DNA of 64,000 nucleotides, from positions 38,750,001-38,814,000 of the forward strand of contig NC_134482.1 of the NCBI RefSeq assembly GCF_964194025.1, written 5' to 3'. This document shows, piece after piece, positions 37,001 to 63,200 of the stretch. A program made the translations under genes and the position numbers. How positions within the stretch are numbered: position 1 is the first letter of the stretch; every line of letters starts with the position of its first letter. Under the pieces are notes generated by a model. That model did not search any database. It saw only the letters and a list, made by a program, of their open reading frames with translations, and had not been told where the DNA came from. Source of the DNA: Convolutriloba macropyga (lineage: Eukaryota).

Positions 37001-38330
37001 AGATCCGACTATCAAGGTATGCAAAGTTTTTGCATTGTTTTCGTGAAACAAGTGAGACACATTTTAGTGCAATTCTGACCTATAATTTTTTATCCTGAGT
37101 TTAAGATTGACGAATTCTGATTTGCAAGGCGTCTGACTGTGTGATTATTATTTGCATGCCTCTGTATCAGTGAACTATTATCATATACTAAAGACAAGGA
37201 TAAACGGTAAACTGCGTTGCCACTTGATTTTCCAATCCTTCAGTGATAAACATTATATATGATATTGTCTTTAAAATTTGGCTTCGCCCACCTTGTTAAT
37301 TTCAGTTATATTTAAAATATCAAATCCTACGTCCTGGGTTTTTTTTATTTGTAACTGTATACTAACTTACAGGTAGACTGTTTTAAGAAGTGATTGTAAT
37401 CTCCTATTAATGAAAAATGTCGATAACTTTTATTTTCAAATAAATTAAAATCAATCGTGAACTTTTCGTTGCCGATTATTTCATCATATGACGTTTTCTC
37501 TAAGTAAACGCAGAAAAAAAATACAGCTGAAAAATATAGTTGTGTCAATTGTTTAATCAAAAAATTTTTTAACCAAAAAGGCTTCAAAAAAGCAAGAAAA
37601 TCAAATTCAGTTTAAAAAATTTGAATTTAATTTGTCCTTATTAACATAAACGTATTCTGATTGAAACTATTTTCCATCAATTTAAGGTAAAAGTGGAATC
37701 AAAATTCAGAATTACGGAAGAACAAAAACAGTACAGGGAAGTCAATAAATTGTGGTCAAAAAGTAGAAAAGCTGCAGAAGCGGTTAAGCAATCCAAATTG
37801 ATGTCTCATTAAGTACAACAACGTAGCAAGACTCGTTCTAATAAACGATCCAAAAAATTGAATCAGAAGTCTGGCCTTACTAGCGTATCTATTGATTTTT
37901 TGAACGTGACGGAACAAAGAGGTAGGAAAATATTTTTTAAATAAGGAGAACAAAATAAAAGCAGGCGAATCAACAGATGTCCGAATTTTTTTTGATGAAT
38001 ACAAACAAATTGCAGGGTTGTTCAGCTTTCATGTCTTCGGAACCAATATTATGTTGCCGATATTTAATCAAGAACGCATAGGTGAGCTCTCAATTGTATT
38101 AAAAAACAAGTTTTCCAAAAATTAACTACCTAAAAATTAATAATGCTAAAATTTTTAAGATAAAAGGTTTCAAATGCAATGTATGCTGCTGAAGTCTACC
38201 AGCCCTATAAAAAGAAGGTTTAAATCAAAATTAAAACTTCAATACTTTTTTTGTCTCTTATATTGGCATCACAAATACGCCCAAAAAACGGACATACAAA
38301 CAAGATGTGTATGAACTGCAACGAGCGTTT

Positions 38331-38509
38331 GGATCTTTTCCGTTTGTGCCCTCCCAGTACGTTATGCTCTCCCTAGTTACAGAGCACGTGTCATTACATA
38401 GTAAATCATTATGAAAAAATATGGCACGTGCTCCCGGCGGATACAAATAATGTACACCCACTAAGCTATGAGTGTGGAGGGGGGGGGGGGCTCAAACGGA
38501 AAAAATCCG
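38331..38509. mobile_element. ~160-180-bp MITE family B (relatives near 23115-23245, 38975-39110, 40179-40330, 50275-50432, 56975-57131)
   Basis: TIR ggatcttttccgtttgtgccc / gggctcaaacggaaaaaatcc, paired internal gcacgtg motifs shared by the copies. Confidence 0.7.
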
Positions 38510-40030: not shown

Positions 40031-40708
40031 ATGTTTACCCATTTTTCATTCATTTATTTAACAAACTTTGTTGTAAAGTTTTTTCAACAATTTTCATATT
40101 ATTCTGTTCAACCGTTGTGTCAAACGTTTTCCCTTTCTTAAATATTGAACGTGATGTTTGCAAGCCATAGCAATTTTAGGATCTTTACCTTTTGTGATCT
40201 TTTTCACCCTCAGTTTAGTGAGTGCATTTTATCTGCACCCCCAACAGCACGTGCAATATTATTGCATAATGATTTACTATTTAATGTCACGTTCTCTCGA
40301 AGAGGGAGGGGCTGCATAACTGAAAACTTATTTCAGCCCAAATTTATTACCTAATATTGCAGACGGTGTAATGTAGTTATTACGTAACAAGTTTGACAAT
40401 CGAATAGCTGCTATCTATATAAATGGGGATATTATTTTTTGGAATTTATTACGGAACTTAATATGGAATTTGTTTCTTATGTGCTGCCTGGGAAATGTTA
40501 ACGACTTCATTCAACGTTACAAAATGGCCACCTGTAATCGATGGACTTGAAACATTATTAGACAATATTTAATTTATAAAGATTAGTATAAGTTATCTCT
40601 TATAGGGCTACAAAAACTTTCACCCATGTAACATGTACGTCAGCTTGTTCACTCATGTATATAGAAACAAACTTTTTTTCTAGAAGTTCGAATTTTTCAA
40701 ATAAATTT

Positions 40709-43700
40709 TTATTGAAGGTAACTTTTGCATGAAATAGCTCCGTCCATAACAACCGAACTTCCGCTCATAAATTCAGCCTCACTCGATGCCATAAAGGTGA
40801 CCAAATTAGCGATCTCTTCTCCTCTGCCTATTTTTTCCATAGGATGAACTTTCCTTATTTTTTCATAAAATTCGTCCGCAAAGTCTTTGGGAAGGCCAGC
40901 GTTGGTACCAAATGACGTCACAACAACTCCTGAGTGGTTGATATTAAGCAATCACTGTATCGGTTTTTTGTCCTCCATTTTTTAAGAGTAAGCAATTATT
41001 TGTTTTACTTTGCAGAAGTGTGCTAGCTGGAAGAATCAAGAAAATTAAGTAGCAATTTATTGTTAAATAGTCAACAGTGATTAAAGTCAACGTTTTTTAT
41101 ACTTAATTTTCTTTTTTCTGAAGCGGAAATCACAGAGATAAATGCTTAAATGGGTTTCTAAAAAGTGTTTTTCGTCAAAAATTTTTTTCATCCTTGCAGA
41201 AATTTTTGTCGGAAAAACCTTCTAAAATACAATAAGCAACACAAAAAATAGAAGAATGAAAACAACTTCAGAAAATAATATTTGAAGAATGTGTCAAAAT
41301 ATCTTCATCTGATATTTTTGTATAATCTTTTATTGAGAAATTTTTGAGAAGGCTAAAACTTTAGCAAACTCTTAAATGTGATTGATCAAATATCGTTTTT
41401 ATTGCAAAGTATCTTGACTTTTTTTAATAATTGGTGTGGAGTTGTAGGTTTTAATTTTTATGTTGCCTGTCTGACTAATCGATGATAGCCGCAAACTCAT
41501 TTTTCAAATGAAAATGGAAACCACAAAAATTTCAAAACTAAAAAATTTTTAAATTAAGTGAACATTTAGTCAAAGACCAGTTGTGTAGATCCTTATGTTG
41601 TTTAGTTGTGCTGCTTGCTTCATGTCAGTTTATACTTTGAAACAAAATCTGAGAATAATATTTTTAGCTTGTTGACTGATCTTTGATATAAAAATTAATT
41701 GCTTGCTTCATTCTGAATATAACGGACAATAGATTTTAAGTACTTAAACATGAATTATTTTTTGCTCTGTGTAAACAACTTGAAAATAAACAAATGTGCT
41801 TGAGGCTTTTTGATAAATCCACGTTTTTCTTTACAAGTTAGTTTTCAATTTGATTTTTTGTCACATTACGAGCATCTACCGGAGAACTAAAGCTACCTCC
41901 AAAGAATGTGACTGGAACCGACTTCCGTTAAATGTGGAAAGAGCTTGAATTTTGTGAAAGTGGTTTCCACAAAGCAATTAAGCACCCCAAAAGGAAAAAT
42001 AGGTTGAAGTAAATTTGAAAAGTACTTACTACGTTCAGCTATAAAGGCATTTCACAAAAATTTACACCTCTTAATCCTTTTGTCATCCATTTTACGATTT
42101 TATCGATTTGATGTTTTGAGATTTCATAAATCAGGGAATATGTTGCAAGTAAGTTTTCACTTTTCATTTCCAGTTTAAAAATAGAGATTACCGACAAGAA
42201 TTTTTCTATAAGGAACAATTGAAAGTATGTTTCACGCGCACGATGCATTACAAAGGAAAAGTGAAATCTGGCAAAAGTCATTGTTAATCCTAGCAAAATC
42301 CGGAAAAGGAATAGCTCAAATTTGTTTTCCTTTTCCCTTCATTTCAAAAAAATTCCAACATTTAAGAAAGCAAGAATTTTCACACTATCAATCTCTATTT
42401 TCTTGAAAATTGAGTTGAAAATTGAGCTAAGATTCAATAATTGGTCAGCCACAAATCGGTCAGCTGCGTGGGCGGACAAATAGCATAGCTCAACCGAACA
42501 GTTGACATCGAAAAGGCTACAATCAAACTTAGCTTTATTTTGGTCAGCCGGCCAAACATTTAAGACACTTTAATGTTTTCTCAAACGTTTCTTCATAAAG
42601 AACTTAACTCGAGCAAGCTCTTTTCATGCCAATTGCATCTCGAACATTCTTTTTTAAGTATAGTTTTAAACCGGGTCATTTTAATTGTTGTAACGTTTCA
42701 GCGCCCGGTACCAAATTAGGGTCCCATTTGTTCCAATTTACCATTTGGTTATATACATTTTATCTTTTTAAACCCAAAAAACGTATTTTAATTTTCCCAA
42801 ATTAATTCCCAAATTTAGTGCAATGGTTATTATAATCAATTTGGCACGTGCGGTGGCTCGTAATTTTTCTTATCCGCTAACTCTTCAAAACTGGTCAGTG
42901 ATTGCTTGTTAGTTTTTCCTGGATTAATATTATTGGCGCGAATCCCATTTTTTCCTTCTTCAAGCGCGATGCATTTCGTGAACATATCTAGGGCCGCTTT
43001 GCTCATGCAATAATAGGCCATATTTTCTATCGGCGTCTGACCCAAAATAGATGAGTTATTAATGATGTTACCCTTCGTTTCCCGAAGATGGGGTATGCAA
43101 AGTTTAGTCAACCGAATAGCCGATTTCAGGTTGACATCAAAAACAGTTTCATAAGTTTCGATTGATTGGTCGGCTATGAAACCAAATATGGTCATTCCTG
43201 CATTGTTGAACAAAACGTCAATTCGACCAAACTTCTCAATGACGTCACTAACTATTTTTTCACATAATCCTTCTTTTCGAAGATCACCTGAAAAATTTAT
43301 GCTGTAGAAATGAATCCCCTTATTTTCATCCCGAATCATTTAATCCCGCATAGCTTAACCCCACATCGTCTAGCCCCCTCTATCATCCATTTAACCCATC
43401 TATCATTTAACCCCTCTATCATATCACACCTCTATCATTGAAAAAACAGGGGTAAAGCGATAGGGGGTTAAATAAATAGGGTAAAGAAGGTTATTATTTA
43501 GAATCATCGTGATTCGCAGTTTTTGAGTTTTCTTGATATTGTTATCAGAAATGTTAGTTAGAGAGCTTTTCATTGGTTTGTTTTCACTGCTGGATTATAA
43601 TTTCTCATAAAGAGGATTGGCAGAATAGAATCTTTCAAGCATCTAAATGTGAAATAGATTAAAAGTACTTAAAATTCCAAGCGTTTCAGTACTTTATTGT

Positions 43701-46700
43701 ACCTGCATTTTAAATAGCTATTAAAAAAGTAAGTGTTAAACGGTTTTTTTTTCATTGACACTATAAACAGATTGAAATGCTTCAGTTGCAGCTAGCACTA
43801 TTCAGAATGCGAATTCAACTAGACATTCGTCAAAAGTTTCTTCGGTTACAATCAAATTTTTTAAAATTATTATTTTATATTTTTTTAATTTCTCTAAATC
43901 AAGAGCACTATTTCTATTCCAACAGATTGTAATAATTATGAAAAATTGAAATGTAACTACTGCAAAGCAAAAATATCTTAAACTGGTTAGAAATGAAGAT
44001 TGAAAAAACGCTAAACAAAATGCGAACATTTTTGAGAATGATCATTTTTTCACTAAAATAATCAGGTTTAAATCATCTTTAAGTCTTTTCGATTGATACC
44101 TCATACTTGATTGAGAACAAAGAAAATCAGTTAGGTTATAAATGACATCAGAAGTTATATCTTTTAGGATCTCACCAGTAACTCCTAGGACAATATTTTG
44201 GGTGTTTTGATTAGAAAAGATTGTTCAAATTACTATAATGCAAACCCTAAGTTCTGCGGAAACTTTTACTGATTAAGCTCTTCAAGCGGCCGATTTATGA
44301 GGCAGATCTGCCGCGGTTGAAAATTTAATGCTTTATGAAAAATGAAGGGGTAGTTTTGGCTGATTTTACAAATAAATCATGTCTTCTATATTTCCGATTT
44401 CTTTTTGAGCAATTTGACTTTTCTTAGGTGATTATACTTGATACAATGACCTCTGAACTACTGTACCCTACTTATCTTTTGTAGGATACAAAATTTTAGA
44501 GGTCATTGTATCCTTCACCTTAGTCGAGACCGGATCATTATCTTGCAGGAATCTGTCAGATTTTGGCAGATAAATTATTAGCTTTCAAAACATGGGAGAA
44601 AAGTTCCTGCATCTGCCAAAAAATGGTTATCTGGCTCAATCTGCCAGAACAATGGCTATCGTGCGAATTTGGTTAGAAGGCGGAAAAGTGGTTATCTTGG
44701 ATGAGTCTCATAGAATTTTTTTTAAAAAAAATTAGAATTGAGCTTCATTATAATTAGCTGTTAATATCTAAGCTGCTCCTTTTGTGTTTTGATGAAATTA
44801 TATGCAGTAAAGTTGCTTTTTTATTGAATAAAAGAGCACAAAATGCTTACCAATGCTCGATAAAAAGTTGCTCGATATGATGATTTACGCAGAAATTTTT
44901 TAAAAATTGTTCATGTGGGTAATTTGCGCATAGTGTACACTGTACGCTTTTTCATTTTAAAAATTGCTATTTGTTTTTTAAAACGGATCACAGGCGAATT
45001 TTTTTTGGCTCTCAAACACCAAATATTCAAGCTATTTAACTCATTGCATCGTCTTTATTAAATTTGAACACAAGGTTTATTCGAATATTGCGAGGGTGAA
45101 GTAAAAGCGTTATGATACAGTACTATATTAAATCAGATAATCGGATTCCATAATCTGGTTGGTTATCTGGTAGGAATCTGGCAAAAAATTGGCAATTTTT
45201 TAATAATCCAATAGAAAACTGACTATTATGCATGAATCTTGCGGAAAATTGTGCCAGAATAGGCATCGTCTTGTGAGAATCTGCGAGAATTTGCCAGATT
45301 CCTACTAAATAAGCATCTTCTCTCGATTAGAGTGAATTTCATCATTATGAACCGGCCAAACATTTCCTGCTACACGAGAGCTGATGATTTTATGATCGCG
45401 TTTGGTAAACTTTTTAACGGGTAAGAGCAGATTTCGATCATAAATTTTGTTCAGCTTTTTCAAATTGCGGTGGATCAAAATAGTGTCAAAACAACATGAA
45501 TCCGCATAATATTATCAAAAGTTTGATATATAATCTTACTATTTGAATTAATTTGTCCCTCACTTTTCTTTGACTCCATCGTGCAAACGCTGTTGAACAA
45601 TCACGTGAATTCAACATCTTGTTGAACCCTTATCTTCGTTCCCAAAAGTTTCAGATATAACTGCAGAATTTTTTATGGAAATAAATCGTGAATCCGAGAA
45701 ACGTTTGGTATCATGAGACAAGATTAAAAGCGCTTCAATGATATATATGATTTTTCTTCTCTCAGTTTTAACGTTGACTGTTCTTTTGCTTGTTTTTAAC
45801 CACTTTTCCACCAATACATTAATTAAAGATTTGATCTCCAGATCTGGGTAAAAGATAAACTTGAAAAATAAATGTTTTTTTTTCTCATATGGTTTACTTT
45901 GATTGACCTCTGGCCTCTGTTTTTGCATTTTGATTTAGCACAAAGGTTGACACAAACTACCAATTCGTTGGCATTCAACTTCATCATTAGCATTCGATAT
46001 CTTTTTCAGTTAATTTTGATAGTTAATATTTAACCACGCAAAAGATAAGAATATAAAAAATCGGCAAAATCAAATGATCCTTTGACAGAGCTTTTATCTT
46101 TAGCAACAAAAAAATTAGGAAATATGGTTGACTTTCTTTTGTTTATATTAAGCAAACAGCTATCGTAGATAGATTCACAAAATCTCGGCTCTATAAAATT
46201 TACGTTATCTTGGAAAATTCATAAGCAATTTAGAAGAGATTCTTTTTAAGCGTAATTATTTTTTGCTTCATGAAAAAAAAGAGAGAACTCGGAAAATTTC
46301 ATCCGTTTTTGTTATTGACGGTAACCAAAATTGAAATATGTGTGATAGATTTTTTCTATAACAAGTATAATTAAACTTAAAATCGTTGATAATTACTGAC
46401 TGAAAATTCAATAAAGAACTCAAAATTTTTTTAGCTGACTTTGTGTACAAAAAGATAAAAAAAAACTGTTTTTATAAACGGTTTTTGTTATAGTAAAAGC
46501 TTTCATTATTAGGACAAATTTTTAAAAAGGTGAGAATTGAAAGGTCTATCTATAGAGTTCCGTGTAAGAGGTCCGTTCGCTCGTTATACAAACATTGGTT
46601 GAGATTCGCTACGGTAAAACCATGCTGTACATTCAATATATTGACATCAAAAAAAATTATGATCATTTAAAAAAGCCAGTATTGAGCATTAATGTTTCTT

Positions 46701-47608
46701 TTCTGATTTTCAGTGACGCTTAGCTCCGGAAACCAACTTAACCTAGACCACCTTTGTTTTGCAGAAATTATATTCTCTCAAGGGCATTCTACGATTCAGT
46801 TAGTAAATACTAGAACTGATGAGGATCATTTTTGTTCATTTCATGACTAGAAGTTACACCCAAAATGCAAAATTTCAAGACTTTTGTTTTCTCTGAGCCG
46901 AGAGCAAAATTATTTTTTTATCAGCCCCATTTATCAGCTCTAAGTGAAAAGTAATTCATATTTTATTTTTTTTTGTGCTATTATGTGCTGCTAACCAACT
47001 GTTCTTTTTTGAAGAATGGAATCAAGTAGTTTTATGTTTTTTTCAAAAGATCTATAGAATGCATTAAGGAGACCGTGTAGTGATTGCTTGCAAACCTGAT
47101 TCAAATTAAAACCAACTATGATTTGTATTTTCTCAATAAAACGTTATTTTTGAGTGGTTGCAAGATTTTTGAAGAAAATTTTACAGGACAATGCAAGACA
47201 ATGTTGCAATTTTGAAAAATTCAGTCAGGATCTTGCGAGATATTTTTTCTTTACCTAGAAGTCGAGTATAGTAAATTCAGTTTTTAAGACAAGTCCCTTC
47301 TTAAATGGTAATTCTAAATGCTTTTGCTAGAATAGACAACTCAAACATTGAAATGATTTATAACAACGCCAGCCATTAAAACAGTTTTTTGGAACCCTAA
47401 AACTTTGCAAGCCTTTCACTAATAAAACTTCAGCATCTTTGTTCACTGCTAGACAATCTTGTTTTGTCTTTTCCAATCCGTCTGTATTGCGACCATTGAG
47501 ACATAGTTTTGTGATTCCCTTTTCCACAAATTTCACAGCCGTGTCTTGTCCTATCCCAGAACTGGCTCCAGTTATAATCACCACTTTCTCATCAGAGAAC
47601 AGTTTCAT
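40709..47608 (-). CDS. Classical short-chain dehydrogenase/reductase (FabG-like), paralog 1; exons 47608-47413, 43287-42919, 40929-40709; 261 aa
   Basis: TGASSGIG, NNAG, catalytic S and YCMSK, NPG.V.T, P..KIG, G....DG; GRN after beta-2 suggests NADP(H) preference; introns GC-AG (4125 nt) and GA-AG (1989 nt). Confidence 0.9.
44440..44512. other. 73-nt near-perfect hairpin in SDR-1 intron 1
   Basis: gatacaatgacctct/agaggtcattgtatc 15-bp perfect stem extending to ~32 bp with a 9-nt loop. Confidence 0.7.
44518..45332. mobile_element. Diverged MITE-like element with CC(C)TAGTCGAGA-like ends
   Basis: ccttagtcgaga ... tctcgattagag; recurrent aatctg(c/g)cag motifs near both ends; no TSD seen. Confidence 0.45.
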
Positions 47609-47689
47609 GACGATAAGGGTCGTTTAAAGGAAAATATTCAATTTATAACTTAAACTTAACTTCGAAATTATTTAACTTCAAAATGCGTT

Positions 47690-47730
47690 TCAAAGGTCTA
47701 ATTGAACAAATCGCAAGTTAGAAAGGAGCA
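47690..47730 (-). promoter_or_regulatory. Non-coding block conserved upstream of both SDR paralogs (partner ~58960-58998)
   Basis: aaaggtctaattgaacaaatcgcaagttagaaaggagcag vs aaagttcaatttgaacaatgctcaagttagaagagcag, both ~70-120 nt upstream of the ATG. Confidence 0.5.
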
Positions 47731-50700
47731 GTACCGTTTAAAGTAAACTCAAATTACCTCCATCAATAGTAACGCCGCTGTAATGAATGGTGGGACTGTT
47801 ACTGAATTTCAAATATAGATTCACCTTGAAATTTACTTCAAAGAAAGCTTTATGTTTCAGAAACAAATATATTGTATAAGATCAACAAACATTGAACGAA
47901 TAACGCCATGTATCAAGGCAATGGTTTTCGAGCTTCTTGCAAGTTTGTTCAGATTGAACTCAAATGTAATAATTGTGCAATTCAACCTAAAATTTAAAAA
48001 ATTAAGGTAAAAAGCAGGCGGGAATTAGTTGATCAATTACTTTTTCACATAAAGTAAGGTGACCTAATTTTCCAAAACTATTTTTTAAAATATATATCAA
48101 CCCAAGAGATCATTGCACTTGGGTTAGTAAAAGCTGCAATTAACTGCCCTCAGGGCTTAGAACTATCTATCTACGTGTCAGGGCTTAAATTCAGCCGTAA
48201 TGCAAATTAATGGAGACCAATTTCGGCCTCTCAATAATGAATTGTCTTAAAGATTTACATCTCCTTTAACTTTTAGGATCTCCTTTACCTTTTTACTATA
48301 TCTTTTAAGGGTCTTCTGTAGATATCAGCATTATGCTCACAGTAATTAAACTACACATCATTCATCTTATACCTCATTTTTTTCTTTTATGCATTAGTGG
48401 TCAGTACAAACCCTCAAATGGGGCATAATTGTATGTGACATACAATGTGACATAAGTGGATTTCACACGCAACACTGAAAACTTTAAATCTGTGGAAAAC
48501 TCTTACTTTCACTAAATTGGCTCGGACTGATTTTTTTCAGGAAATAATTCAGTCTTGTCCACAAACGCGTTTGGTTAATTCATCGAAGGATTAGTCTCAG
48601 TGTTTTTCAAAGGCCAGTGTAATTATATCTTACGATTTGAGTAATAATATTTCGTGATTGGCCTAAATCAGAACTATTTACCCGTGATTATATAAATGAA
48701 TCTCAATAATAATAGAATAATAGAGGGGATATTTGGGCAACTAATCATTGATTATAGATTTAAGTGAATCAGAAAAATTGGAATTCAAGAAAATAAAATT
48801 GCTTCTTCAGGCTTTGTAAAATCAACTGGCAAATTTCAGTATTGTCCTCGAATGGACCCTAAGAGCCTTTTGTGGACAACAATCGGAAATTAGTGTCAGC
48901 GGAGCTCAAGTTTTCGTAGCTGAAATCCATTGCTCTAAAGGAAGCGAGAAATTGAACAAAATTAAGGAGTCTGTCTTCACAAATAATTTGGTTTCAATCA
49001 AAAATTTTCTCTGTTGCTACTTATTTAAATATCTGTTTCATGCAAAAATTGAAAAAACATATCCTATGGTGACCAAACAAATCTTACTCAAGTTAGAACT
49101 TTCAGATGCATCGATACAGGGAAATATATTCTTGCAAGATCTTGTAAAAAGTTGTTTCTCTTCTAGGATCTTGCAAGATAAACTTTTTGTCAATTAGGGT
49201 AGCTCTCTGCAGTTTGTTTATTTTTTGTTCATCACTACTTGCTGTGTGTGAAAACCATTTTTTAGGTTTTCGGAACAGAAAAGCAAGGCTCATTAGCTGC
49301 ATTTGTAGAGAGTTGGCTGTAAAACTGGGCTACATGTGCAAATTTTCGACAATTTTGGCAGAAACCGTTCTTGCTCAATTGTTTTGTAAACAAAAAACGT
49401 TTCTCTTCAGTATAAGCTTGTCTTTATGACATCAATAATGATCTGTGCGTTTGAGAGTCAAAAAAGTGCAAAAAATAGAAACACAGAAGATAAATAAGGA
49501 TCAACTGAATTCGTTTGTATTGTTTCAGTAAAAAGGTACAACAATGCGAGTTTCTCATCCGTAACATTTGAAAAAATTTAAAAATGACGTGATTTATTAT
49601 CGTAATTTTCACACCAAAATAAAAATAAAAAATTCAATTTTTCTCAATATTTATTCTGCTTTTCATTACCTGTTGGTATCAGCCATAATTTTGAGACTTT
49701 GAGAACTGACACTCCTAATTGACACAATTTGTTAGTTATCTACCTTCGCTGGTCAGTGGAGTGGTTCTAAATACAAAAAGAGCTTTTTGTCACCGCCTAT
49801 ATAAAACTTCAAACTTTCAATCTTCAAAAGCTCGGACAATTTCTGAAGACCTTTTAGCTCCAGAGATAAAACCATTTGATGTTTTTAGATACCCAGTGTT
49901 CAGTAATTTTTTGTGTATATCGTAATCTGTTACAACTAAGAAAACAGGTGTTCTTAATTCAACCTTTCCGATAGGAACTTAAATTATCAATTACATGTTC
50001 ATCCAGAATATAGTCCAAAATAAAGCTTTATCAAGGCTTTAGGATTTGGTTTTGTCGTCTGTGGTTATAAATCAAGTCAAAAAGCTCTTCGATTGCTTAG
50101 GAAACCATTCACACTCGGGTGTTCGCTTTATGGCTGAATTAGCATCTCCTAAAATTAATTATTCATTTTTAATACTTTTGAACTTGGTCTCAGTTGATTG
50201 TGTTCATCAACTAGAAATTTTTTGCTGTCTGTGACAAAGTTCTCATCAACTGTTTAAAATCTATTGATCCGTCGGATCTTTTGCATTTGTGCGTTTGTGT
50301 CCCCCCAGCTAAGTGGGTGCATTGCACCCCCCATACGCACGTTCCATTTTTTACATGCGAATCACTATGTGATGGCACGTGCTCTTTAACTGTGAAGAGG
50401 CTAACGTACTGGGGCGAGGGGTCCATTGGATTCTGAATTTTTTCACCTTCCTAAGTAGACAAACCAAAACAGTTTTAGGGTATTGTTAAACTTTTTTCGC
50501 CGCATCATATGCAAATTTTTTGTAGTAGAGGAAAATTTATTGTCACGTCCAGTTGTTCAGGTTGACCTGCAAATTTTATCGCTTCAACAAGAGTCTACTT
50601 TTATTTAAAATTATCGTTCTTTCTGGGGAGGAAAAACAACAGCTGTCAGTCAAATAAAAACTTTTTTGCTGTACAAAATGGCGGTGCATCTAAGTTGTCA

Positions 50701-53700
50701 TAATCATGAAAAGATAATGAGGCAAAAGTAAGAATGCTTTTTTGAATGGTGTTTTAAAAACTGTTCTGTTAAATTTATCTCTCTTTCTGTTAAAGAAATC
50801 TGCTATTTTAACATCAATCAACATTCTGAGAAATTTGTATCGTGGTTGGTTGATTTCTTTCTCATTAACTTTACAACCAAAGAACGGCATTCAGCCATCA
50901 AATCTTTTAACACTCTGTTTTTTTTTATCGTCAAGACCTCAATACTTTTTAATCGAGCAGCAGACACTGGCACTTTTCGAAATATTTTGTCAGGTGTTTC
51001 ATTTTTTTCTCGTAAAGGTGTACGAAGAATGTTAGTGAAAAATTTTCAGCTGTTTTATACTATTGTGTTTAATTTTTTTGATAGCCATATCAACTGAAAA
51101 GAGTTTGAGAAAGTTTATTGATTTAACGGTTTTCTTTTGCAAATCTTAGTAGTGCAATATTTTTGCCCATGTTCCATGTTAAATAGAATCGACAAGCCAG
51201 CAGACGTCCATTGTCGAAGACAAAATCAACTATTGCGTTTTTTTTGTTATTCCGAGATGTTGATGATCAAAGTTTATAAAGAGAGACAGTCGAGGACTAC
51301 ACGGAAACTTCTCAGCAAAATTCAATCACAGTTTCACCATGAAATGCTCTTATTGGCAAACCCTGTGTCAAATCCCCCCCCCCCCCCCCGATTACCCAAT
51401 GGGGGTAAACCCGGGTTGAAGTTTCCTTGATTTTATACAAGGTTCATAGTTCATATATCATTTCATACTGTTCATACTTGATTTCTTAGTACGACCTTTG
51501 TATGAAACCAAAGAAATCATAGATGACCCTAGTAGAATACCAAAAATCATACGTCTATTTTTCATAAACTTTAATATTTTTTTGATTTTGTTGCGTAAGA
51601 CATCACCTATATGATTCCCCGGCATTAATTTTTGATCCGCCAGAAGCCCTAACGTACAATTTTATTTGCAAAGTTGAACACTAAATTTAAGAGTAAGTTC
51701 ATACCGATAGCTAAAGTATTGATGTTCTCTGAAGCATGTTCATACCTAAAAATGCCTATTTATAAAAAACATTTGTAAAAAGTTTCTTTTTTCATTTAAC
51801 CTCAATTTCGTTTGTTGAATATGTTTAAATTGCAGAGTATTTCTTTTAGCGCACACAAAGAATCAATTGTGGATTGCAAATGAATTTTAAATGGGATTGT
51901 AATTTTAGAAGGGTAGAACGACGTAAGATAAGGGAGGAAGGGGAAAGGGTGAGTAGAATCATAAAGATGGACTGTCAATAAATAGTCAAGCATTGATATT
52001 TTGGAGGCTAAGGAGAAGCGGCTGAAAGGACAGAGGTTGCGGGTTCAAGACTGTCAGTTTTTGAGTATGTGGGCTATAGCAATATAAGATTAGCGCTTTC
52101 AAGGGGTCTACCCCAATTACCCCCTACTCGTGCATCATTTTACCGCCCACCTCCCCCCAAAAGAAAAAATTATCCCTACTTTTAAACCATCCCACCATTT
52201 AACCCCCATTACCGCACAAAAAGATTTATGAGTGATTCCATACTTTTTCGATTTACTTTTTTGGATCTCTACTTCGTTCCTTCATATTTGTTTTCACCAA
52301 TTTAATGTATCTAAACTTGTTGTCCTGAGCTCTCTTACTTAAATGTATAGCTAGGTTGTTACATTCCATTTTTTCTCAGCACGCGATATCAATTAATGTA
52401 CCTCGTTCAATTCTTTGATTAAGTTTTTTATTTTGTTTAAATATGAGAAACGTTTACAGATTCTCTCTGGGGTTTCAGAATTGCAAATTAAATGCCAAAA
52501 ATTCTGGCTCTTTTCGATCACTGTCTACATTCTTTTCGACAAAAAGTGACCAAAGTTCAGAAGTATTCTTTAACCTTGTACAATTCCACGTCTTCTAAAA
52601 GTGAAGTATCATGGACATCATCTTTAATATCCTGTAACAAAATTCTTGACAAAAAAGAATTGTTCCAAAAAATTTTTCAAAAAGGAGGAAAGTATATGTA
52701 ATGCTGGTAATTATATTAAATTTGAAAAACAGGAAAGTATTTAAAATATCGAACGAAAAACTGAAAATAAAAAAGATTACTAGGGGGAGAAATAGTGTTG
52801 AAATTTAAAAAAAAACAAAAGGAAAAAATTTTTGTTGTAATTTTTTTCCGTTTTTTCGTTTTCTCGTAATGAAAAACTGCTGTAATAACCAGTGGTTCTC
52901 TTTATCGTTTAGATTTTGTGGAAAATAGAGGACCCGAGATCTCACAATAGCAAAGATATTACCTTTGCAAATGTAAAACTTAAGAAAAATATAGAACTGC
53001 ATTCTTTTCTGAAGTCTAGAGTATTCAGTATCTGCAAAAATTTGACGTTCAAAAAGACATCATTCCACCAAAATTATTATTGAAAACTGAAGATGAAATT
53101 ATTCTATTATCTTTTTATAAACCTTATTTTGTCAGAGCAGATGTTTTGATTTAACCACCTCTAGTGTAATGCAATTGAGAAGATTTTGAGTTTGAGAGTT
53201 TATTGATTAACATTTTGTAGAACGTAATACAAATGTTCATTTTCAAAAAACACTAGAAGAAAATTTTTCTTCTTTTTTTCCGTATAATGCAATGGGTGTT
53301 TAAATTGGTCTTTTCCCCGACTCTGGGCGTTCTTTCAAGAAGAAAACCTAAATATTTTACTGATTATGAAAGTTTTTGCATGCAAAACTAAAGGTGTTTT
53401 TGAATGAGAATTTTTTTAAACTCAATTATAAATTACTAAAATTTTCACTTTATTTAACTACGCCGAAAATTGAAAATGCCAAAATCAGAATTTACTGAGA
53501 AGCAATTTTCTTCATTACTGCTAAATATGAGCGTTTGAGGACAGTTTTAATCATGCGCTTATTTGTTAGAAATAATTAGGGCCAGAGTGCAAAAACTGTC
53601 AGAAGTCTTAAAAAAAATTTTAAAAAAACTTTATAATTCCTACAAATTTTGGTTTTTTGAATATTTTCAAAAAGTGTTTTCTGAAGTCTAGCTCTGAACA

Positions 53701-53956
53701 CGTCTGCAGGAATTGGAAAAAAGGAAGTGGACCATTATAATCAAGAAACAACAAAAATTACAAAAAAGTAAAAAAAACTCCCTGTCAAAAATTAGTGTCG
53801 AATTTACTATTACCAAAACAATTACCTCAAGAAATCCACTCTTGGTTTTCCAGATAAAACAAACCAGACATTAATGAATGATGCGAACATGAGTAAAGAT
53901 CAGCTCCTGTAATGAAAAATACAAAAAATGCTTTTTATTTCTGCCGGGCTTTTTAT

Positions 53957-53985
53957 TTGTGTGTTTGTGTTTGTGTTTGTTTTTG

Positions 53986-54042
<57 letters not shown>

Positions 54043-54139
54043 ATGCACATGCATGCAGGGGTGTTTTTATGTGATTGTGCGTGTCTATATAAATTGTGTT
54101 GTATGTGTGTGTGTGTGTAAGAGTGAGAAAGAGGGAGAT

Positions 54140-54177
<38 letters not shown>

Positions 54178-54210
54178 AGAAAGAGATAGATAGAGTTATC
54201 TGAGAGAGGT
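53957..54210. repeat. Compound microsatellite: TG-rich, (CT)n, TG-rich, (GA)n
   Basis: Directly visible dinucleotide tracts. Confidence 0.95.
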
Positions 54211-56414
54211 AAATCATTTAAAAGTTAGACTAAATCAACAGAGGTAGAGTCACAAACTGTCTAAAAAAATAGTTAATATGCATGCTATTTGTTACAATTT
54301 TTTGGCTTTAAGTTTGCTGGAAAACAATATAGTTTTCAAATTCGAATAGTAAAAAATCTGCGAGATTTTTTAAAAAACAAAATAAATATTGTGCTCATGA
54401 GGCATCAAAAAAATTCCTTTTAATTATTAATACCCAAATTACAAATACCGTTGCTATCGCCTCAACCAGTCGACAACAAGTTTTCGAGATAAAACGAAGA
54501 AGACCTAAAGCAACGGTGACGATTCTTGGGTCAGCTGCCAAATATCAGTTGACAGAAGAAATATTATATAATGTTTCTTTTGGTGTTGGGATTTGTATTT
54601 AGGTGATTGTGTTTTTGTGTGCAAGATGTGTTTGTAAATTTGTAAATTTGTATGATCTGTGTGCTTGTAATTGTCTGTCTCTGTGTCTTTCAATTAGTAC
54701 TACATTTTTTTTCCAAAATTAGCTAGGGACTTTTTTGGTTGTTGTCTGTTGAAAAAGATGGTGTACTTTTTGATTTGAACAGTTCAGGCAATTTCACCAA
54801 TGCGTATTATTTATTTTTGGACACCCTCAGCAGTTTCTCTGACAGAAATTTATAGTTTTTTGCAACCTTGAGAGTTATGTTGTTTTACTGAGGAAACGTC
54901 ACATTTTTTTTGTAATTTTTCGAATGGCAAACTCTTTTTTGGAAAATATCCTGTTCTCAGAATCCCTCCAGTTCTGCCTGTTTCTTTTTTGTTTTGCTTG
55001 GCTACACCTAAAGTATTTGCAGCTGTCTTTAATTTTTTCTTTTGTAGCTAATACAAACGAAATTGTGAAATTTGTTGCATAGCTGCATACTACTCCTCGT
55101 TTTTTGTCAATTATGTCAAAATACGAATCAAAGAATCACACTCGAATTGAAAATTATGGGACTGTGATTCGAATTAGTTACCACACGGTGGTTTGAGCTT
55201 GGTGGTAGAGCATTTCAGCTCTGAATCAGTCTCCGGACATGCTTTTTTCTGAATGGCCATTACTCTGTGCATGTAACGATAAACACTGCATAGTTTTGAT
55301 TTTCACTTTAAATTTGCTGCATGAAAAATAACATGTTCAGCTCAACTGTTGCCAAAAAGTGTGTTTTGCATGTGATTCAAACTTTGATTATATAAGCTAA
55401 GTGGGCCTTGTGGTAATTGCCTACAAACTAGATGAACTATAATGAGTGTGAATTCTACTATAGAAAAAACCGGTTATAAGTTGCAAAAGCATGACTTTTT
55501 TCTGCGCAGACTTAATTTAGAGTAAGAGTAATTTTCAGACGAAACAGGGTAATTTAGCATGAACGAATTGTTTGATCTAATATATTCATATATTCATAGC
55601 TGTACATAAAAAATCTCAAAATGTTCTGGAGGTGCAACATTTCACAACTCAATTATATTTTTACTAATGAAATGTGCTGGTTCAGCGCTAAATTGCCCAG
55701 ACACTATAAAATATCAACTCAAACCTTTTCCGCGTAATCTTGTGAAGTGTTTGAGTTAAGAGCTGTCTTAATTATAGAGGTGTTTCGTTGAAATTAACAT
55801 CAGGATCATACGTTGAACTAAAAATATGCCTTTTGAAAAATATTCGAGATCCTTGATATGAAAGAAAAGATCAAAAAACCCTAAGTTCAGGTCCCAGACC
55901 AAAATAGCTCCAATTTAGATTGCTCCATGCCAATATCACATTTGATCAGTCTGCCCCAGGGCTAACGTGACCTCTGGGGAGACAAATTTAAGACCATTAT
56001 CCAGACCATCTGAAAGGAAAACACGTCATCTGGTTAAGCTTTATAGTTCGTGCCTTCTTGGTCTGTAAATTCTGTCATTGTTGCTAAAAATTTTTTAGTA
56101 AGATGTCCATTTTTAAATAATCGGCACATTTTTAGTCATTGATTCTGCTGGAAGTTAATTGGAACTATTAATACATATACGTTATGATGAAGACCCTGAT
56201 CTTTTGGAACTGCGTCTCTCCCCCTCTGTAATATGACCCTCCATAATTGATACTTTCACAAATAACTATATAATTGTATTCATAAACTGTAATGGATAGC
56301 GCACTCGGGGGGCTGATACGGGCCTAGGATAATTAGTTTTATTATAGGAGACGGAGGGGGAAGAGACAGCTCCAAATATAGGGGTTCCTTGTCAACTAAG
56401 TCTGTTCTTTGGTT

Positions 56415-58889
56415 TTATTGGAGACAACTTTTGCATGTAATAGCCCCGTCCGTAACAACAGAACTCCCACTCATGAAATCAGTTTCACTTGATGCTATGA
56501 AAGTGACCAAACTAGCGACATCTTGCGCATTTCCTATTCGCCCAATTGGGTGTTCCTTTGTTTGTCTGGCCCAGAATTCGTCAATAAATTCCTTAGGAAT
56601 ACCCGAGTTGACTCCAAAGGGTGTCCCAATAATACCTTCAAAATTGCGCCCAGCAGTCTTTATACCTGTCTGGTATAATGCAAAACACTTAACTTAATAA
56701 AAACTTTGTTGCTCATTTTTTCAGAACTTTTGAAATTACCAATTCATGATCGTGAACTGAAAAAAGAAAGTTAAACTAGCTGAGATTTTCACAACAATTA
56801 TTTAATATAATTGAGTGGTTAAACAATTCAGAAATACGAAGGGAAATTAAAGGTCTTTTTGAAGTAAAGGGTCGCTGATTAATTATATATGATAATTTGA
56901 CGTGCCACTAAGAAATGGTTTTAGAATTGTTTAAAGAAAATCTAATTATGAGATTTGATTGTCTCAAAATTAGAGGATCTTCCGATTCTGCACCCCCCCA
57001 AGCTTACTGGGCGCGTATTATTTGTGCCCCCCTCCCCAGACGCACGTGCTATATTTTTCATAATGATTTATTATGTAATGGCACGTGCTCTGCGTGCAAC
57101 TGGGGGTGGGGGGCACAAACGGAAAAGATCCAAATTAGATGACGATCAAATTGTAGTGGCCTTTTTATAACATTTTGATTCTTTTTCTATCCTTTTAGCC
57201 GAGATTTTTCTTTCATTTTTTGAGAGATTCCGCATGGCATGCAACTAATTTCACAATTTTTCAGAGAGAAATCTAGAAAAATGTGACGTGTTAAGAGCTC
57301 TGATGTATTATCAATACGAAAAACGCTTCTTTTCCATGATATTTCAGAAATGACGTTGTTTGTAATTGCTGAGCGTTTTTTCCCTGGATTCACGTTGTTG
57401 GCACGAATCCCGTTTTTTCCTTCCTCAAGTGCAATGCATTTCGTGAACATATCCAGGGCCGCCTTACTCATGCAATAAAATCCCATATTTTCCACTGGAG
57501 TTGTTGCCAAAACCGACGAGTTATTTACAATATTACCTTTGGTCTCACGTAAATAAGGAATACATAATTTGGTCAAACGAATCGTGGATTTGAGATTGAC
57601 ATCAAAAATGGTGTCGTAAGTTTTGATTGGTTGATCGGAGAGAAGACCAAATATGGTAAACCCAGCATTGTTGAATAAAATGTCAATACGACCAAATTTC
57701 GCGATGCAGTTGTCAACTATTTTTTCACATAGTCCTTCAGTGAGCAAGTCACCTGAAAAAATATTTGAAGTGATTCCTGATTGTCGAATTTCTTTTTGTA
57801 AAATGAAAACAAGTTTTTGTTTTTCAAACTCTTTATTGTACTTAACGTACTAACATTTTCCTACATTTAAAACCAAAGACAATAAAGATTTAAGTTTTCA
57901 AAAAACATACAGAGCTCTTCTTCAGCAAAAAAAACTTTTTTTCCGTAGAAGTTTGATGCTACCAACGTTCAATCATTCTTTGTTTCGAAGCCAAAAACAC
58001 ATTGAACTTCCTACAAATTGGTCCCTTTTTTCGGTCTCTTGGATTAAAAATGCAACTGCAATTCACGAAAAATGTTTGATTGAATTCTACACAGGGGACC
58101 AATTCTTCCATGAACTACAACCTAAAAGAAAACTTAATTAATTGTATTCCTTAGCTAGATTCAATTTAGACTAGATAAAAATTGTAAACGTAGCTATGAT
58201 CCTGAACGTCTTGAAAAATTTTGCTGTGCGGCAAAAAAATCAGAGAAGATCAAGAAAATTCTTGCAGCGTACACTAAACCACAATAATATCAACAAGATT
58301 ATTCAAGAAAAAATTGTTTTCCTGTCTCCTGATGTTGCTATCAATTAATTTTACAATAATCAGAACTCGATTTAAATTTGAACTCTTCGTTTGTACTAAA
58401 TTGATGTTGTCGATAAATCAATTGCGCTTTTTATTATCACAATTTATATAAGTCAGAATAGAAAGCTTTCGAAGCAATTGGCAAATTTTAAATTAAAATT
58501 TATTGGACATATAATGTATTGAAAAACTTTAATGAAATACTGGGTCAATTTGAGCATATTTTCAAAGTCAGTTCAAAATTAGTTGAGCATATTTTTAGTT
58601 TTTTCAAAGTCTTAAGAAAAATCAGAACCTCCGAAGTCAAAACTTAGACGCTGAAAGTTCTGAGTCCTAATGTCAAAAGAAGAGCAAGCTAACCTTGAAC
58701 CAATAAAACTTCAGCATCTTTGTTGGCCGTTAGGCAATCTTGTTTTGTTTTTTGTAGTCCTTCTATGTTGCGACCATTGAGACAGAGTTTTGTGATTCCC
58801 TTTTCCACAAATTTCACAGCCGTCTCTTGTCCTATTCCAGAACTAGCTCCAGTTATAATCACCACTTTCTCATCTGAGAACAGTTTCAT
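56415..58889 (-). CDS. Classical SDR, paralog 2; exons 58889-58694, 57752-57384, 56635-56415; 261 aa
   Basis: Same motifs and exon lengths (196/369/221) as paralog 1; exon 3 hand-translated IIGTPFGVNSGIPKEFIDEFW...HPIGRIG...GSSVVTDGAITCKSCLQ*; introns GT-AG (941 nt) and GG-AG (748 nt). Confidence 0.9.
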
Positions 58890-59778
58890 AATTACTACTT
58901 GCTTTATCCTCAAAACGTGAACTAATATTTAAACAAGAACGAAAATCTAAACGTGTCACTAAAGTTCAATTTGAACAATGCTCAAGTTAGAAGAGCAGAA
59001 ATTTAATGTCAATCCAAACAAAACGAACAATAGCTTCAATAGTAAACAATTGCAATTGCCAACGTTTCAAATTTCTGCAAACAAATTTTATCTCAAATGC
59101 CATCAATAATTTGTCAAGGTTTGTCCGAAGAAAGACACAGGGGTTATTTTCGAACAATTTAATGTTTGTTTGATGGGCTTAAATTCAAGTGGCTAAAGTA
59201 TAAGTCGTACTTCAACTTCGGCAAAAGAATGCTAATTTTCAAACTGTATCCTAGACAACGAATAATTGAAGGAATAAAAACATTGTAGAATTTGATTATA
59301 ATGATAAAATTGTTTTTTTTTCTATTTTCTGAAAAGTTTTAAAATTTTTTTTTTCGAATTTTTAGGACCCAACGAATAAAAAGTTCTTTTGTAATTTGTT
59401 TTTCAGTATCGAAATAATTAAACTGCGAGGACAGTTTACAGCAGGAATATTAATTTTACATAACTTATTGATTTAGCGGTTACACGACACTTTTCCAAAG
59501 CCGAAAGGACCAAAGGTGGCAAAATACCCAAATTACTGCCCTGAATATTTTTTTAAAAATTCAAAAATCCGAATAAAAGCTTGCTTTCTCATAATTAATC
59601 TGATAATTTAATCCCATGTTCGGTTGAGATAGTTTCAAATCAAATCCTACGGATGGAGGGGCAAACAACTAACTGAGAACCTATTTTAACTGACCTGCAA
59701 ACAAATTGAACAAAGAAACGAATAGAAAAACAGTCAATACAAAAATATCCGCATCGACAAAACTCATGACGCTAATAC

Positions 59779-60279
59779 TGTCGCGGTCGATAACACGGGT
59801 CAAAAGACTTCAACAAAAAAAATTTCAATGAAAATTGGAACTGAAATTACACAAAAATTAGCTCGTATTTATAGTAGTTATCTATGCGAAAATATACAGA
59901 GAAAATTTAGATCACCTAAAAATAATTTACTTGATTGACATGTGAATAGATCTTAGTTCCGAATCCCAGAGGTGATTTTCTATTTTCATCAACATTTCAT
60001 GAGAATCATATATGGCCTAGGTACAATCGAATTCTTTAGTTGGAGGTCAGAGGATGTTAGAATCAAGTTTCTGTTGGCGGGAGAAATTACCTCTGACACA
60101 TGAATGATAGGTCAATAAGATAATGATAGCGCCAAAACAAAACTAGAATTGAGTGTAGTTTTGTGATCATTACTTATCGACAAAACAACATAGTTCGTCA
60201 GGTAAGTTATTCTTTTGTTCTTGGAAACTTCAATAAAGAGAACTTCTAAGTTTCTCGATGTTTCTTTGAAACCATCACA
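59779..60279 (-). repeat. Probable 3' LTR of the Gypsy element
   Basis: On the minus strand PPT AAAAGGCGGGAGGA precedes TGTGATGG; TATAAATA near 59870; ends ..CCGCGACA; second LTR not in window. Confidence 0.5.
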
Positions 60280-63200
60280 TCCTCCCGCCTTTTTAAAGCA
60301 AGTTTGTGAGTATAAGTTCTCAAAATATGTCGGGTTGTTTTCTATATGTAGTGTTATAGCTTAGGTTAGCTATTTGAATTGGAAGAGTAGAGTGATTACA
60401 CTATATTGAATCTATTGTGGAATCGCAGGGCGAATCCTGAATTATGTGTGTTTTACTAAATTCGCTCAATGGAATCGCAAGGCGAATCCAGATTAAGTTA
60501 GACTTGAGTAAATAAGAAGCGATTACAGAGACAACTTGAATTCAAGAGATTAATCGAGATTAAGCTTACTTAACATAAAATACTATGAAATACAAACTAT
60601 GAAATAAATTAGTAGACTAGCGGGAATATAGTTATATGTGAGTAATAAAAGTCATCATAACCTTAGTTATAAAACGCATGATATAAATATTAAAATAGAG
60701 GGTAATTAATAATTTAGTACACACAAAGATTTCGATATATATTTATGTATCCATAGTTATCACATTTCCCCCATGACAGGAAAAAATTGTGTTATGTATT
60801 TACAATTTTTTAGAAAGAATCAACACAAATAAATTAAATGTGTGGAAAAGAATGAACAGTACAAGTGTCAGAATCATTTGTGGAAAAGCGCCACGATTGT
60901 AAAATTAAATAAACGGGAAGGCATTATTTTATGCATTTGTAGAGCAAATACATGTTGAGAAATATGAGTGCACAAGCAGTGGAGATACTATTGAATACTA
61001 TATGGATGGAACTGCTTGGCGGATGCAGCAATTATAATTTTAAAACACAACGAAAATGGGATTCGCAGAGCGAATACAGATAAGAATTGCAGTTGAGGAA
61101 ATGGGAAATAAAATTAATGAATAAATGAAACATAAATACAAAAAATTGCATTCGCAGAGCGAATACATGACTGAATTTAAAAGGAATGGTTTTTTCAACA
61201 GTTTTGAAGTTTTATCAATTGTCCTTAAATTTTTTGTTCTCAGCATCCCATACTGACATCTCTCTTTCCTGTTCATATTCATAGTAACGAATTCGGGAGT
61301 CGGGTGGAGATACTTGACCAACTTCAATATCGGGCCTTGGTGGAGAGGGAACTCGAGATTGTTCGGCACTTTGAAATAAGGCAAATACCGATTCTTCGGT
61401 GGCTGAACTTTTCTTGCTTTGTTTTTTCGTCTTGCGTTTCTTTGATTTGGAAGGGTTAGCAGTTGTCAAAGAACCAGTCGGGGAAATATCTGCCTCCGTA
61501 AAGCCGTAGAGTTGTTGTCGTTTTCGTTTCCGCCCTTCGTTCTGTGATGCAGTATCTGATACCAGTGACGATTCGAGTTGTTCTTGATGTGGTGGTACTG
61601 GCGGAGCGGGTACTGATGAAGGTCCAGGTTGATCTTGAGATGCACTTTCACTGGGTTCGTTCGGAGGGGCTGTGGTTCGTCTACGTTTAGGTTGTGGCTT
61701 GGAGGGTTTGCGAACGGTTAAAGCAGGGTTGACGTTGGAATTGACGGATGAAAACTACTGATGTGGTGTCGCGTTGTCGGTGACGTATTTTGATTTCTCC
61801 ATTTTCTGTTTTTTCAAGTCATTGCTATGCTTGGCTATTTTTCTTTCTGTTGTTTGTTCATATGGGGCGGGTCTGCGCTGTGCGTAAGTCCACATATTTG
61901 TAGCGCGCTTCGCTTTAGTGCCAAGTTTTGCCAAATCACTGTCCCGAACTTTTACAGGTGCTCGTCCTGGCTCGTTGATGATTGTTGTCGTTGTGGAGGA
62001 TTTGGTCACCTACGATCCAGGTTTGAGTACTTCGTACAAGCCAGCGAGTCGTCTTTTTGCTCTCTTCTTTTTGGGCAGTTTTCTGGCAAGTTTGATGTTT
62101 AAAGAGGCCTCAGTTCTGTGAATGGGGTTCGAAATTTTGGGATGGATTATGAATCGGGATTCCTTGTTATCGGAATCACGATAGCGGCGGCCTGCGTCCT
62201 GTTGTGCCCGACACATATTTTTCTCAATATCCAAATCGCTCCTATCAGGATTGACCCAGCCCAACTCGTCGAGGAAATCATCTGCGGTGACCGTGTCGGC
62301 ATCTAAATAGGGGTTAAAAATTTTTTCATAAGTTAGATTTAGACTCGAAGGAACAGTACTAATATTCTTTAAAGACGTATTTGCAGGGCAACCAAAATGA
62401 GCTTCGAACGGTGTTATCTTTGTGGTTTTCTGTTCTGTTAGAAGGAGGTCTGAAATAATCTGTTTAATTACAGTAGAAGTAGCAAAGGTTTCTTTATTCT
62501 CAGCTTTCTTGCAGGATAGACGCCTTTTTATTGTTTGAATCATTCGCTCCACTAATCAATTAGCCCTATGATCACCTACATGAGCGTCGAGAATGTCAAT
62601 GTTATTTTCATTGCAGTAACTTGTAACTTGTTTACCTACTAGACAGGTGGCTTGATCTAAACGTATTGTTCGCGGAATCCCATGATTATATGCATATTCT
62701 CGGAGAAATTTAACGACATTGGTCCCATTAACATTTTCAAAAATCACAACTGTGGGGTACTTTGAATAACGATCGATACATGTTAAAAAGTAGATTTCTT
62801 TATCTTTTTCATTCAATATTGGACCACCAAAGTCAATTTGAATTTCCTCATTAGGTTCTTGACATAATTTATATGGATGCCACTTAGATTTAGGGATGAT
62901 AGGTTTGAGTTTCTTATCAATATCTGTACACGGAACACAATCGGAAGTTTTCGCAAGAATTTCCCTATGCATGTAGGGCCACCATGCATATTGGGATAAT
63001 GAGATCATCCCCCAACTTCCTGGATGCCTCATATGGATTGGCTCGATTACAGCATCTTTGATCGAGTTCGGGATCGCGACGCGTTCGTCGACGCAAAAGC
63101 ATCCGGACTTAACGTGAAGGTCCTTCCAGAAAGAGTGGATGTAGTGGCTGACCTCTTTATATCTAGCCTCGTCGTCTTGCATCACACAGTCCCTGACTTC

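Follow-up and report, generated by a model that had tools for sequence, protein, structure and literature searches.

In this study, we analysed a window of 64,000 nucleotides (nt) from the acoel Convolutriloba macropyga (OZ077313.1:38,750,001-38,814,000), in which two intact paralogous short-chain dehydrogenase (SDR) genes of three exons each lie on the minus strand and are interrupted by introns with four different donor dinucleotides. The two genes are neighbours within a tandem SDR array of the classical type that occupies 38.79-38.93 Mb, and a second pair of SDR genes occurs on the unplaced 75-kb scaffold CAXMKX030000771.1 (L001). The closest database proteins of both genes are RefSeq predictions from C. 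macropyga. Window positions 46415-64000 match locus L003, taken from chromosome OZ077313.1 of GCA_964194025.3, without a single difference. In each gene, the exons measure 196, 369 and 221 nt and together provide 261 codons without a stop, which bears out the statement of an earlier note on this DNA that both open reading frames are intact. In an exon-by-exon profile search, each exon alone matched the adh_short or adh_short_C2 profiles, and the profile ranges were consecutive.

Gene 1 (RefSeq XP_075262554.1) begins with exon 1 at 47413-47608 (ATG at 47608) and continues with intron 1 at 43288-47412 (4125 nt), exon 2 at 42919-43287 (adh_short profile positions 57-179), intron 2 at 40930-42918 (1989 nt) and exon 3 at 40709-40929, which ends with a stop at 40709-40711 and is absent from the RefSeq model. 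Gene 2 (RefSeq XP_075262555.1) is composed of exon 1 at 58694-58889 (ATG at 58889), intron 1 at 57753-58693 (941 nt), exon 2 at 57384-57752, intron 2 at 56636-57383 (748 nt) and exon 3 at 56415-56635 (stop at 56415-56417).

The junction strings were read directly from the minus strand and then re-extracted by script; a slash marks the splice junction in the strings that follow. Intron 1 of gene 1 is a GC-AG intron that runs from AAAG/GCTTGC (GC at 47412-47411) to TTTTTCAG/GT (acceptor TTCAG/GTGAT, intron end 43288), and its intron 2 is a GA-AG intron that runs from CCAG/GAAAAA (GA at 42918-42917) to ACTCAG/GA (acceptor CTCAG/GAGTT, intron end 40930). Intron 1 of gene 2 is a GT-AG intron, from CAAG/GTTAGC (GT at 58693-58692) to TTTTTTCAG/GT (acceptor TTCAG/GTGAC, intron end 57753), and its intron 2 is a GG-AG intron, from CCAG/GGAAAA (GG at 57383-57382) to TTTTGAAG/GT (acceptor TGAAG/GTATT, intron end 56636). 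The donors AAG/GC, CAG/GA, AAG/GT and CAG/GG are exactly those given in the earlier note, and the same holds for its statements that homologous introns differ between the two genes (GT/GC in intron 1, GA/GG in intron 2) and that every junction is in phase 1 with an AG/G acceptor (all four junctions in the window). Shifting any of these junctions by one or two bases yields no GT-AG intron; the options for intron 2 of gene 1, for example, are GG-CA, AG-TC and AA-GG. We also considered U12-type introns and rejected them, because the donors GGAAAA, GAAAAA, GTTAGC and GCTTGC do not correspond to the required /(A or G)TATCCTT with a branch site resembling TCCTTAAC.

Seven further copies were collected from the array and the unplaced scaffold by fetching four loci and locating the exons with tblastn. 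These copies separate the introns into two classes. The donor of intron 1 is GT in six of seven copies (P0002, P0008, L002c, gene 2, P0009 and L004c) and GC in gene 1 only, where the donor region GCTTGCAAA differs from GTGTGCAAA and GTTTGCAAC of the closest relatives by one T>C substitution at position +2. The 5′ end of intron 2 is readable in nine copies (gene 1, gene 2, P0002, P0006, P0008, P0009, L002a, L002c and L004a), and its donor is GG in six of them and GA in three, with GT in none. The string CCAG/GG occurs in gene 2, P0006, L002a, L002c and L004a, and CCTG/GG occurs in P0009; the three copies with CCAG/GA (gene 1, P0002 and P0008) have GAAAAACT in common. Position +3 of intron 2 is A in all nine copies, and the acceptor is AG/G in the eight copies with an available 3′ end. 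An exonic AG precedes the donor in eight of nine copies; the ninth is P0009 (L004:13395-13410), which has TG before the donor and also the longest perfect terminal stem, of 13 base pairs (bp). The earlier proposal that (A or C)AG/G is invariant therefore holds for the four donors of the window, and AG/G(G or A)A is found in most copies of intron 2, but the CCTG/GG of P0009 departs from it. Upstream of the acceptor, T makes up 0.45-0.60 of the sequence in intron 1 and 0.25-0.45 in intron 2.

Judged by these signals, intron 1 falls among the ordinary U2-type GT-AG introns: its acceptor is T-rich, and there is no pairing between its ends. The four dinucleotides, which had been treated as one phenomenon, are thus better divided: the GC donor amounts to a single T>C change in an ordinary intron, and only intron 2 belongs to an odd class. 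Because GG is present in the most divergent copies, it is probably the ancestral donor of intron 2. A tree of exon 2 did not separate the deep branches, and one origin of GA was not distinguished from two. The suggestion that unusual donors belong mainly to long introns was not supported, since the non-GT copies of intron 2 measure 522-3430 nt and the GT copies of intron 1 measure 299-34312 nt. As a separate observation, the RefSeq model of P0008 links exon 1 to exon 2 over an intron 1 of 34 kb (L002:6001-42047), which could represent either a genuine long intron or a chimera that combines two members of the array.

What distinguishes the odd intron 2 from the normal intron 1 is the pairing of its ends, which the earlier inference had left out. 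We compared the first 45 nt and the last 45 nt of each intron with RNAduplex, using 500 shuffles as the reference. The ends of intron 2 pair in eight of eight copies (z = -2.6 to -5.1, p<=0.014), whereas the ends of intron 1 pair significantly in none of six (z = +0.3 to +1.4), both genes of the window included. In gene 1, intron 2 has a perfect stem of 12 bp between the 5′ arm AAGCAATCACTG (42907-42896, intron positions +12 to +23) and the 3′ arm CAGTGATTGCTT (40957-40946), which lies 16 nt before the acceptor AG. In gene 2, the stem comprises 9 bp with one G.U pair, between CGCTCAGCA (57367-57375, intron positions +9 to +17) and TGCTGGGCG (56647-56655, intron positions -20 to -12). Elsewhere, the stem measures 15 bp with three G.U pairs in P0008, 13 bp without a mismatch in P0009 and 11 bp, likewise perfect, in L002a, and the 10-bp stem of L004a is formed by arms of a sequence unrelated to the others (TTGTTTTCAG with CTGAAAACAA). 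When the complete introns of gene 2 (748 nt) and P0009 (560 nt) are folded, the minimum free energy and centroid structures alike are closed by the terminal stem. Comparison of paralogue groups gives an identity of 51% for the first ~25 columns of intron 2 and 42% for the last ~30 columns, compared with about 30% for the adjoining intron sequence and 45% for third codon positions. Alignment of the 5′ and 3′ ends suggests that the ancestral ends of intron 2 were inverted repeats of roughly 20 nt that reached within a few bases of the splice sites, and that each copy has since retained a different part of them.

Intron 2 of gene 2 also contains an inner, G/C-rich inverted repeat of 17 nt (TTTGTGCCCCCCTCCCC with GGGGTGGGGGGCACAAA, 57021-57037 and 57103-57119, 94% complementary). 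It lies near a dispersed repeat that is also found in the window at approximately 38328-38467, 40239-40297 and 50329-50385, and it resembles a small element that is nested within the intron. Folding of this whole intron gave a z of -6.8.

The evidence that intron 2 is removed at the GG or GA junction is indirect but consistent, and it comes from the coding sequence. All nine copies have intact exons of identical length, and the dN/dS ratio between paralogues, a check that the earlier note had asked for, was calculated by the Nei-Gojobori method and is 0.09-0.17 overall, which indicates purifying selection. For exon 3 alone, dN/dS is 0.08-0.28 and dS is 1.2-2.9 between paralogue groups; even P0009, whose RefSeq model ends at 192 amino acids, has an exon 3 dN/dS of 0.28 against L002a. 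Because exon 3 is under purifying selection with dS>1, it has long been translated in frame, and intron 2 must be removed in frame. Moreover, the Pfam adh_short_C2 match is unbroken (1-233 of 236) across the junction in P0008 and in P0010, the nearest transcript-derived protein, which is 61% identical and comes from the Logan assembly of the environmental run ERR1712226; in RefSeq models that use other sites, the match splits in two at profile position ~175. Among the database matches, no protein of C. macropyga was derived from an RNA assembly. A 1-nt indel just past the donor distinguishes gene 2 from P0006 and places their read-through in different frames, and the sequence right after the donor is therefore noncoding. 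To enumerate canonical alternatives, we combined all donors with GT or GC between positions -45 and +150 with all AG acceptors between -200 and +45, requiring an in-frame and stop-free product; none of these alternatives retains the motif NPG-x-(I or V)-x-T, and the nearest options differ between copies. As a side observation, the dS of exon 1 between paralogues (window 47413-47608 and 58694-58889, with the other paralogues) is 0.24-0.5 and lies far under the 1.2-2.9 of exons 2 and 3, which suggests that the 5′ end of the genes has undergone gene conversion or is constrained at the nucleotide level.

RefSeq handles intron 2 in four ways: colinear joining of the exons, a shifted GT-AG intron, a GT-AA intron and read-through. 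The model XP_075263236.1 (P0008, 261 amino acids) uses the GA-AG intron itself, CCAG/GAAAAA...AACAG/GT, and the model of L002a, also 261 amino acids long, is colinear only via GG-AG. The gene 1 model (215 amino acids) reads through intron 2 to a stop at 42836-42838, and the P0009 model likewise reads through. The gene 2 model (288 amino acids) splices from AAC/GTCATT (GT at 57354-57353) to TTAAG/TGT (intron end 56688) and gains 27 residues, and the P0006 model (281 amino acids) uses a shifted GT-AG intron with an insert of 20 residues. The P0002 model (278 amino acids; L001:12503-13868) joins GAAGA/GTTAGC to GCTTAA/TAAC, which gives GT-AA (or AG-TA), and its non-AG acceptor lies 16 nt upstream of the AG of the colinear model; if this model rests on RNA-Seq, the choice of the 3′ site in hairpin introns may vary. 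Measured against the colinear reading, RefSeq mis-models intron 2 in five of the eight copies whose models could be judged. The GC donor of intron 1 is private to gene 1, yet RefSeq splices exactly there, as shown by the sequence LLVKGDLRKEG in its protein (P0121 = XP_075262554.1).

Both introns appear to be new in the acoel. The closest homologues from Lottia and Branchiostoma have two GT-AG introns in common, one at EDK/ILLV, 16 nt upstream of acoel intron 1, and the other inside the N codon of NPG, N(AA/T)PG, 5 nt upstream of acoel intron 2. If these best matches are assumed to be orthologues, the two acoel introns stand at AG/G sites unused in Lottia and Branchiostoma, and the comparison therefore points to the loss of the old introns and the gain of new ones at both positions. 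An intronless homologue of 257 amino acids, 57% identical over exon 2, was observed at L005:3001-3774 (ENA ERZ25071359, contig ctg38011_56x_l, 727 kb), and if its source is an acoel, the time at which both introns were gained could be dated from it. As to the source of intron 2, its borders bear short direct repeats, from AGG up to CCAGGA. When the eight sequences of intron 2 were compared by local BLAST and the core of the repeat was sought by fuzzy matching, the only matches were dispersed repeats in the intron interior and the SDR introns as such; one further match of 11 of 12 positions, at 47078, is at the chance level. The most likely source would be a small DNA transposon.

Considering these observations together, we think it likely that the GC donor arose by a T>C substitution in an ordinary intron 1 and that intron 2 represents an ancient class of introns with paired ends, spliced at GG or GA. 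According to this explanation, intron 2 would have entered the ancestral gene before the array expanded, bearing terminal inverted repeats of ~20 nt that a small DNA transposon most likely left behind, and would since then have been spliced at CAG/G(G or A)A...AG/G without a U at +2. Recognition would depend on the exonic AG, the G at +1 and the A at +3 pairing with U1 and U6, in an acoel spliceosome that, like those of Eurytemora and Oikopleura, tolerates a purine at +2. The stem would join the donor to the acceptor and may offset the absent +2 U and the poorer T-tract of the acceptor. In intron 1 of gene 1, a recent T>C at +2 would have turned GT-AG into GC-AG.

Several points weigh against this explanation. 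RefSeq departs from the GG or GA junction in most copies, and if its models rest on RNA-Seq, true splicing may be more variable than the colinear model. The sequences of the intron ends are only moderately conserved (51% and 42% against 45% at third positions), the copies share ancestry, so that pairing in eight of eight copies does not amount to eight independent tests, and the difference in acceptor pyrimidines between introns 1 and 2 is only modest and was likewise observed in related copies. Furthermore, the direct repeats at the borders coincide with the AG/G splice consensus, and local BLAST and the fuzzy core search, which covered about 200 kb (the window and the fetched loci), revealed no copy of the inverted repeat beyond the SDR introns. 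Because of the last two points, we can only infer the transposon origin.

The most serious alternative, although an unlikely one in our judgement, is that the acoel spliceosome ignores position +2 and uses the exonic AG and the G at +1, so that the four donors reflect one tolerance and the paired ends are an inert relic. This corresponds closely to the earlier proposal of a spliceosome that is tolerant at +2 and relies on the exonic AG, and part of it stands: (A or C)AG/G is common to all four donors, a donor set by the exonic AG and the +1 G fits the data and the precedent of Eurytemora affinis, whose GA and GG donors were described without a hairpin (PMC5714493), and the stem arms, as noted, are only moderately conserved in sequence. 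The remainder does not, since all nine copies of intron 2 have G or A at position +2, and never T or C, despite dS>1, and this position is hence not free. In addition, unconstrained stems of 9-15 bp would be expected to decay at such divergence, and pairing is nevertheless found in all eight copies of intron 2, in varied registers and once with unrelated arms, and in no copy of intron 1. The GC found in one of seven copies of intron 1 is in keeping with the ordinary GC-AG class.

If, instead, the colinear model were wrong, transcripts would use the RefSeq sites, with inserts of 17-27 residues or no exon 3, and GG and GA would not be donors at all. The models of XP_075262555.1, P0006, P0002, XP_075262554.1 and P0009 all avoid the GG or GA donor, as this would predict. 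We nevertheless give it a low probability: the inserts are nonhomologous between copies, differ by the 1-nt indel between gene 2 and P0006 and break the Pfam match at the NPG motif, the shortened models lack exon 3, on which purifying selection acts, RefSeq itself takes GA-AG in P0008, and model failure of the same kind has been reported in E. affinis (PMC5714493). It is still less probable that one or both genes are unexpressed pseudogenes with decayed splice sites. Gene 1 does combine two non-GT donors with a truncated RefSeq model, but the exons are intact in nine copies, dN/dS is 0.09 between gene 1 and P0002 and 0.14 between genes 1 and 2, and the non-GT intron 2 is ancestral and shared rather than a private decay. 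Errors of base calling or assembly, for which one could cite the GC at 47411 that occurs in a single copy, have a negligible probability. The assembly was made from about 64x HiFi reads (PMC13650328), four DNA runs from one study contain 90-95% of the 31-mers sampled from the gene 2 stretch, and either GA or GG is present in each of nine copies that were assembled separately, the unplaced scaffold included. For GA and GG, a base-call error is excluded because the GA context recurs on the independent scaffold L001 and in P0008, and GG in five further copies.

We therefore return to a paired-end intron spliced at GG or GA as the preferred explanation and compare it with known systems. In the copepod E. 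affinis, about 12% of donors are GA or GG, the exonic AG and the A at +3 are obligate, and the introns were recently gained (Robertson 2017, PMC5714493); according to Robertson, only G, not GY, is obligate at the donor, and the GA and GG introns break automated gene models (PMC5714493). GA-AG introns are also known in Oikopleura dioica (PMC5714493; Frey & Pucker 2020, PMC7072748), but such donors are extremely rare in most genomes, and in human introns GA donors account for 0.006% and GG donors for 0.014% (PMC5714493). Acoel intron 2 resembles those of E. affinis and Oikopleura in the G at +1, the A or G at +2, the exonic AG, the A at +3 and the AG acceptor, as well as in the lineage-specific positions of the introns and in the truncated or distorted gene models. 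It differs from those of the copepod in that its ends pair, as no end pairing has been reported there, and in that the GA:GG ratio of 31:5 is reversed in the acoel SDR genes (GG:GA of 6:3, in one family). Furthermore, the copepod junctions are supported by RNA, whereas the acoel junctions are predicted from the genome sequence.

A likeness to mobile introns is also apparent. Introner elements have been described in Amoebophrya (PMC7789003), and non-canonical introns derived from miniature inverted-repeat transposable elements have been described in Fritillaria borealis (Henriet et al. 2019, cited in PMC7789003; PMC13326754). In Fritillaria, changes in the 5′ end of the U1 snRNA, the ACAGAGA region of U6 and the copies of the U2AF gene have been reported (PMC13326754). 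As in these organisms, inverted repeats of 8-20 nt link the ends of acoel intron 2 and the donor is non-GT; direct repeats of 3-6 nt also stand at its borders, but they equal the AG/G splice consensus. However, the Amoebophrya and Fritillaria introns have highly variable or AG-AN borders and many near-identical copies, whereas the borders of acoel intron 2 are strictly G(G or A)...AG, the intron is old (dS>1) and dispersed copies are absent from about 200 kb. Structure-dependent introns have been described in teleosts (Lin et al. 2016, PMC4691745). These introns reportedly have stems of (AC)n/(GT)n repeats and keep GT-AG. By analogy with them, a stem bridging the donor and the acceptor, known in the acoel from the sequence, could replace weak linear signals; unlike them, acoel intron 2 has no GT donor, and its stem is not composed of (AC)n/(GT)n. 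As for intron 1 of gene 1, GC donors usually go with a strong AAG/GCAAGT consensus, from which its donor GCTTGC is far removed. In other respects, it is like the GC-AG class, which in animals, fungi and plants is the most common of the non-canonical classes (PMC7072748), because GT changed to GC at +2, the AG acceptor and the T-rich tract were kept and RefSeq accepted the intron.

Our literature search found no paper on non-GT donors in acoels, and neither the genome paper of S. roscoffensis nor the genome note of C. macropyga (PMC13650328) mentions such donors. Abundant GA and GG donors are known from only two lineages of animals, and the acoel would be the third, with paired intron ends added. 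We would also suggest, tentatively and as a possibility rather than an expectation, that acoels have a standing route of intron gain, in which small elements with inverted repeats inserted at AG/G would become permanent introns, their RNA hairpin would stand in for the +2 U and, in part, for the pyrimidine tract, and selection would maintain the pairing over long periods through wobble pairs and shifts of register. If true, this standing route would mean that U2-type splicing has a branch assisted by RNA structure in a bilaterian. The SDR array offers a natural experiment, with nine copies of the same intron under purifying selection, differing stems and either GG or GA donors, and it permits direct tests of whether structure replaces the +2 U. 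In addition, acoel gene sets, which are used in debates on early bilaterians, are probably damaged wherever such introns occur.

With respect to the remainder of the window, an Rfam scan gave no matches, and the long open reading frames that we sampled outside both SDR genes resemble mobile elements. A retroelement integrase reading frame (rve and Integrase_H2C2) lies at 62010-63545 on the minus strand. On the plus strand, reading frames at 932-4452 show a zf-DBF match, a weak Endonuclease_7 match and a DTD motif that appears polymerase-B-like by eye, and they probably represent another mobile element.

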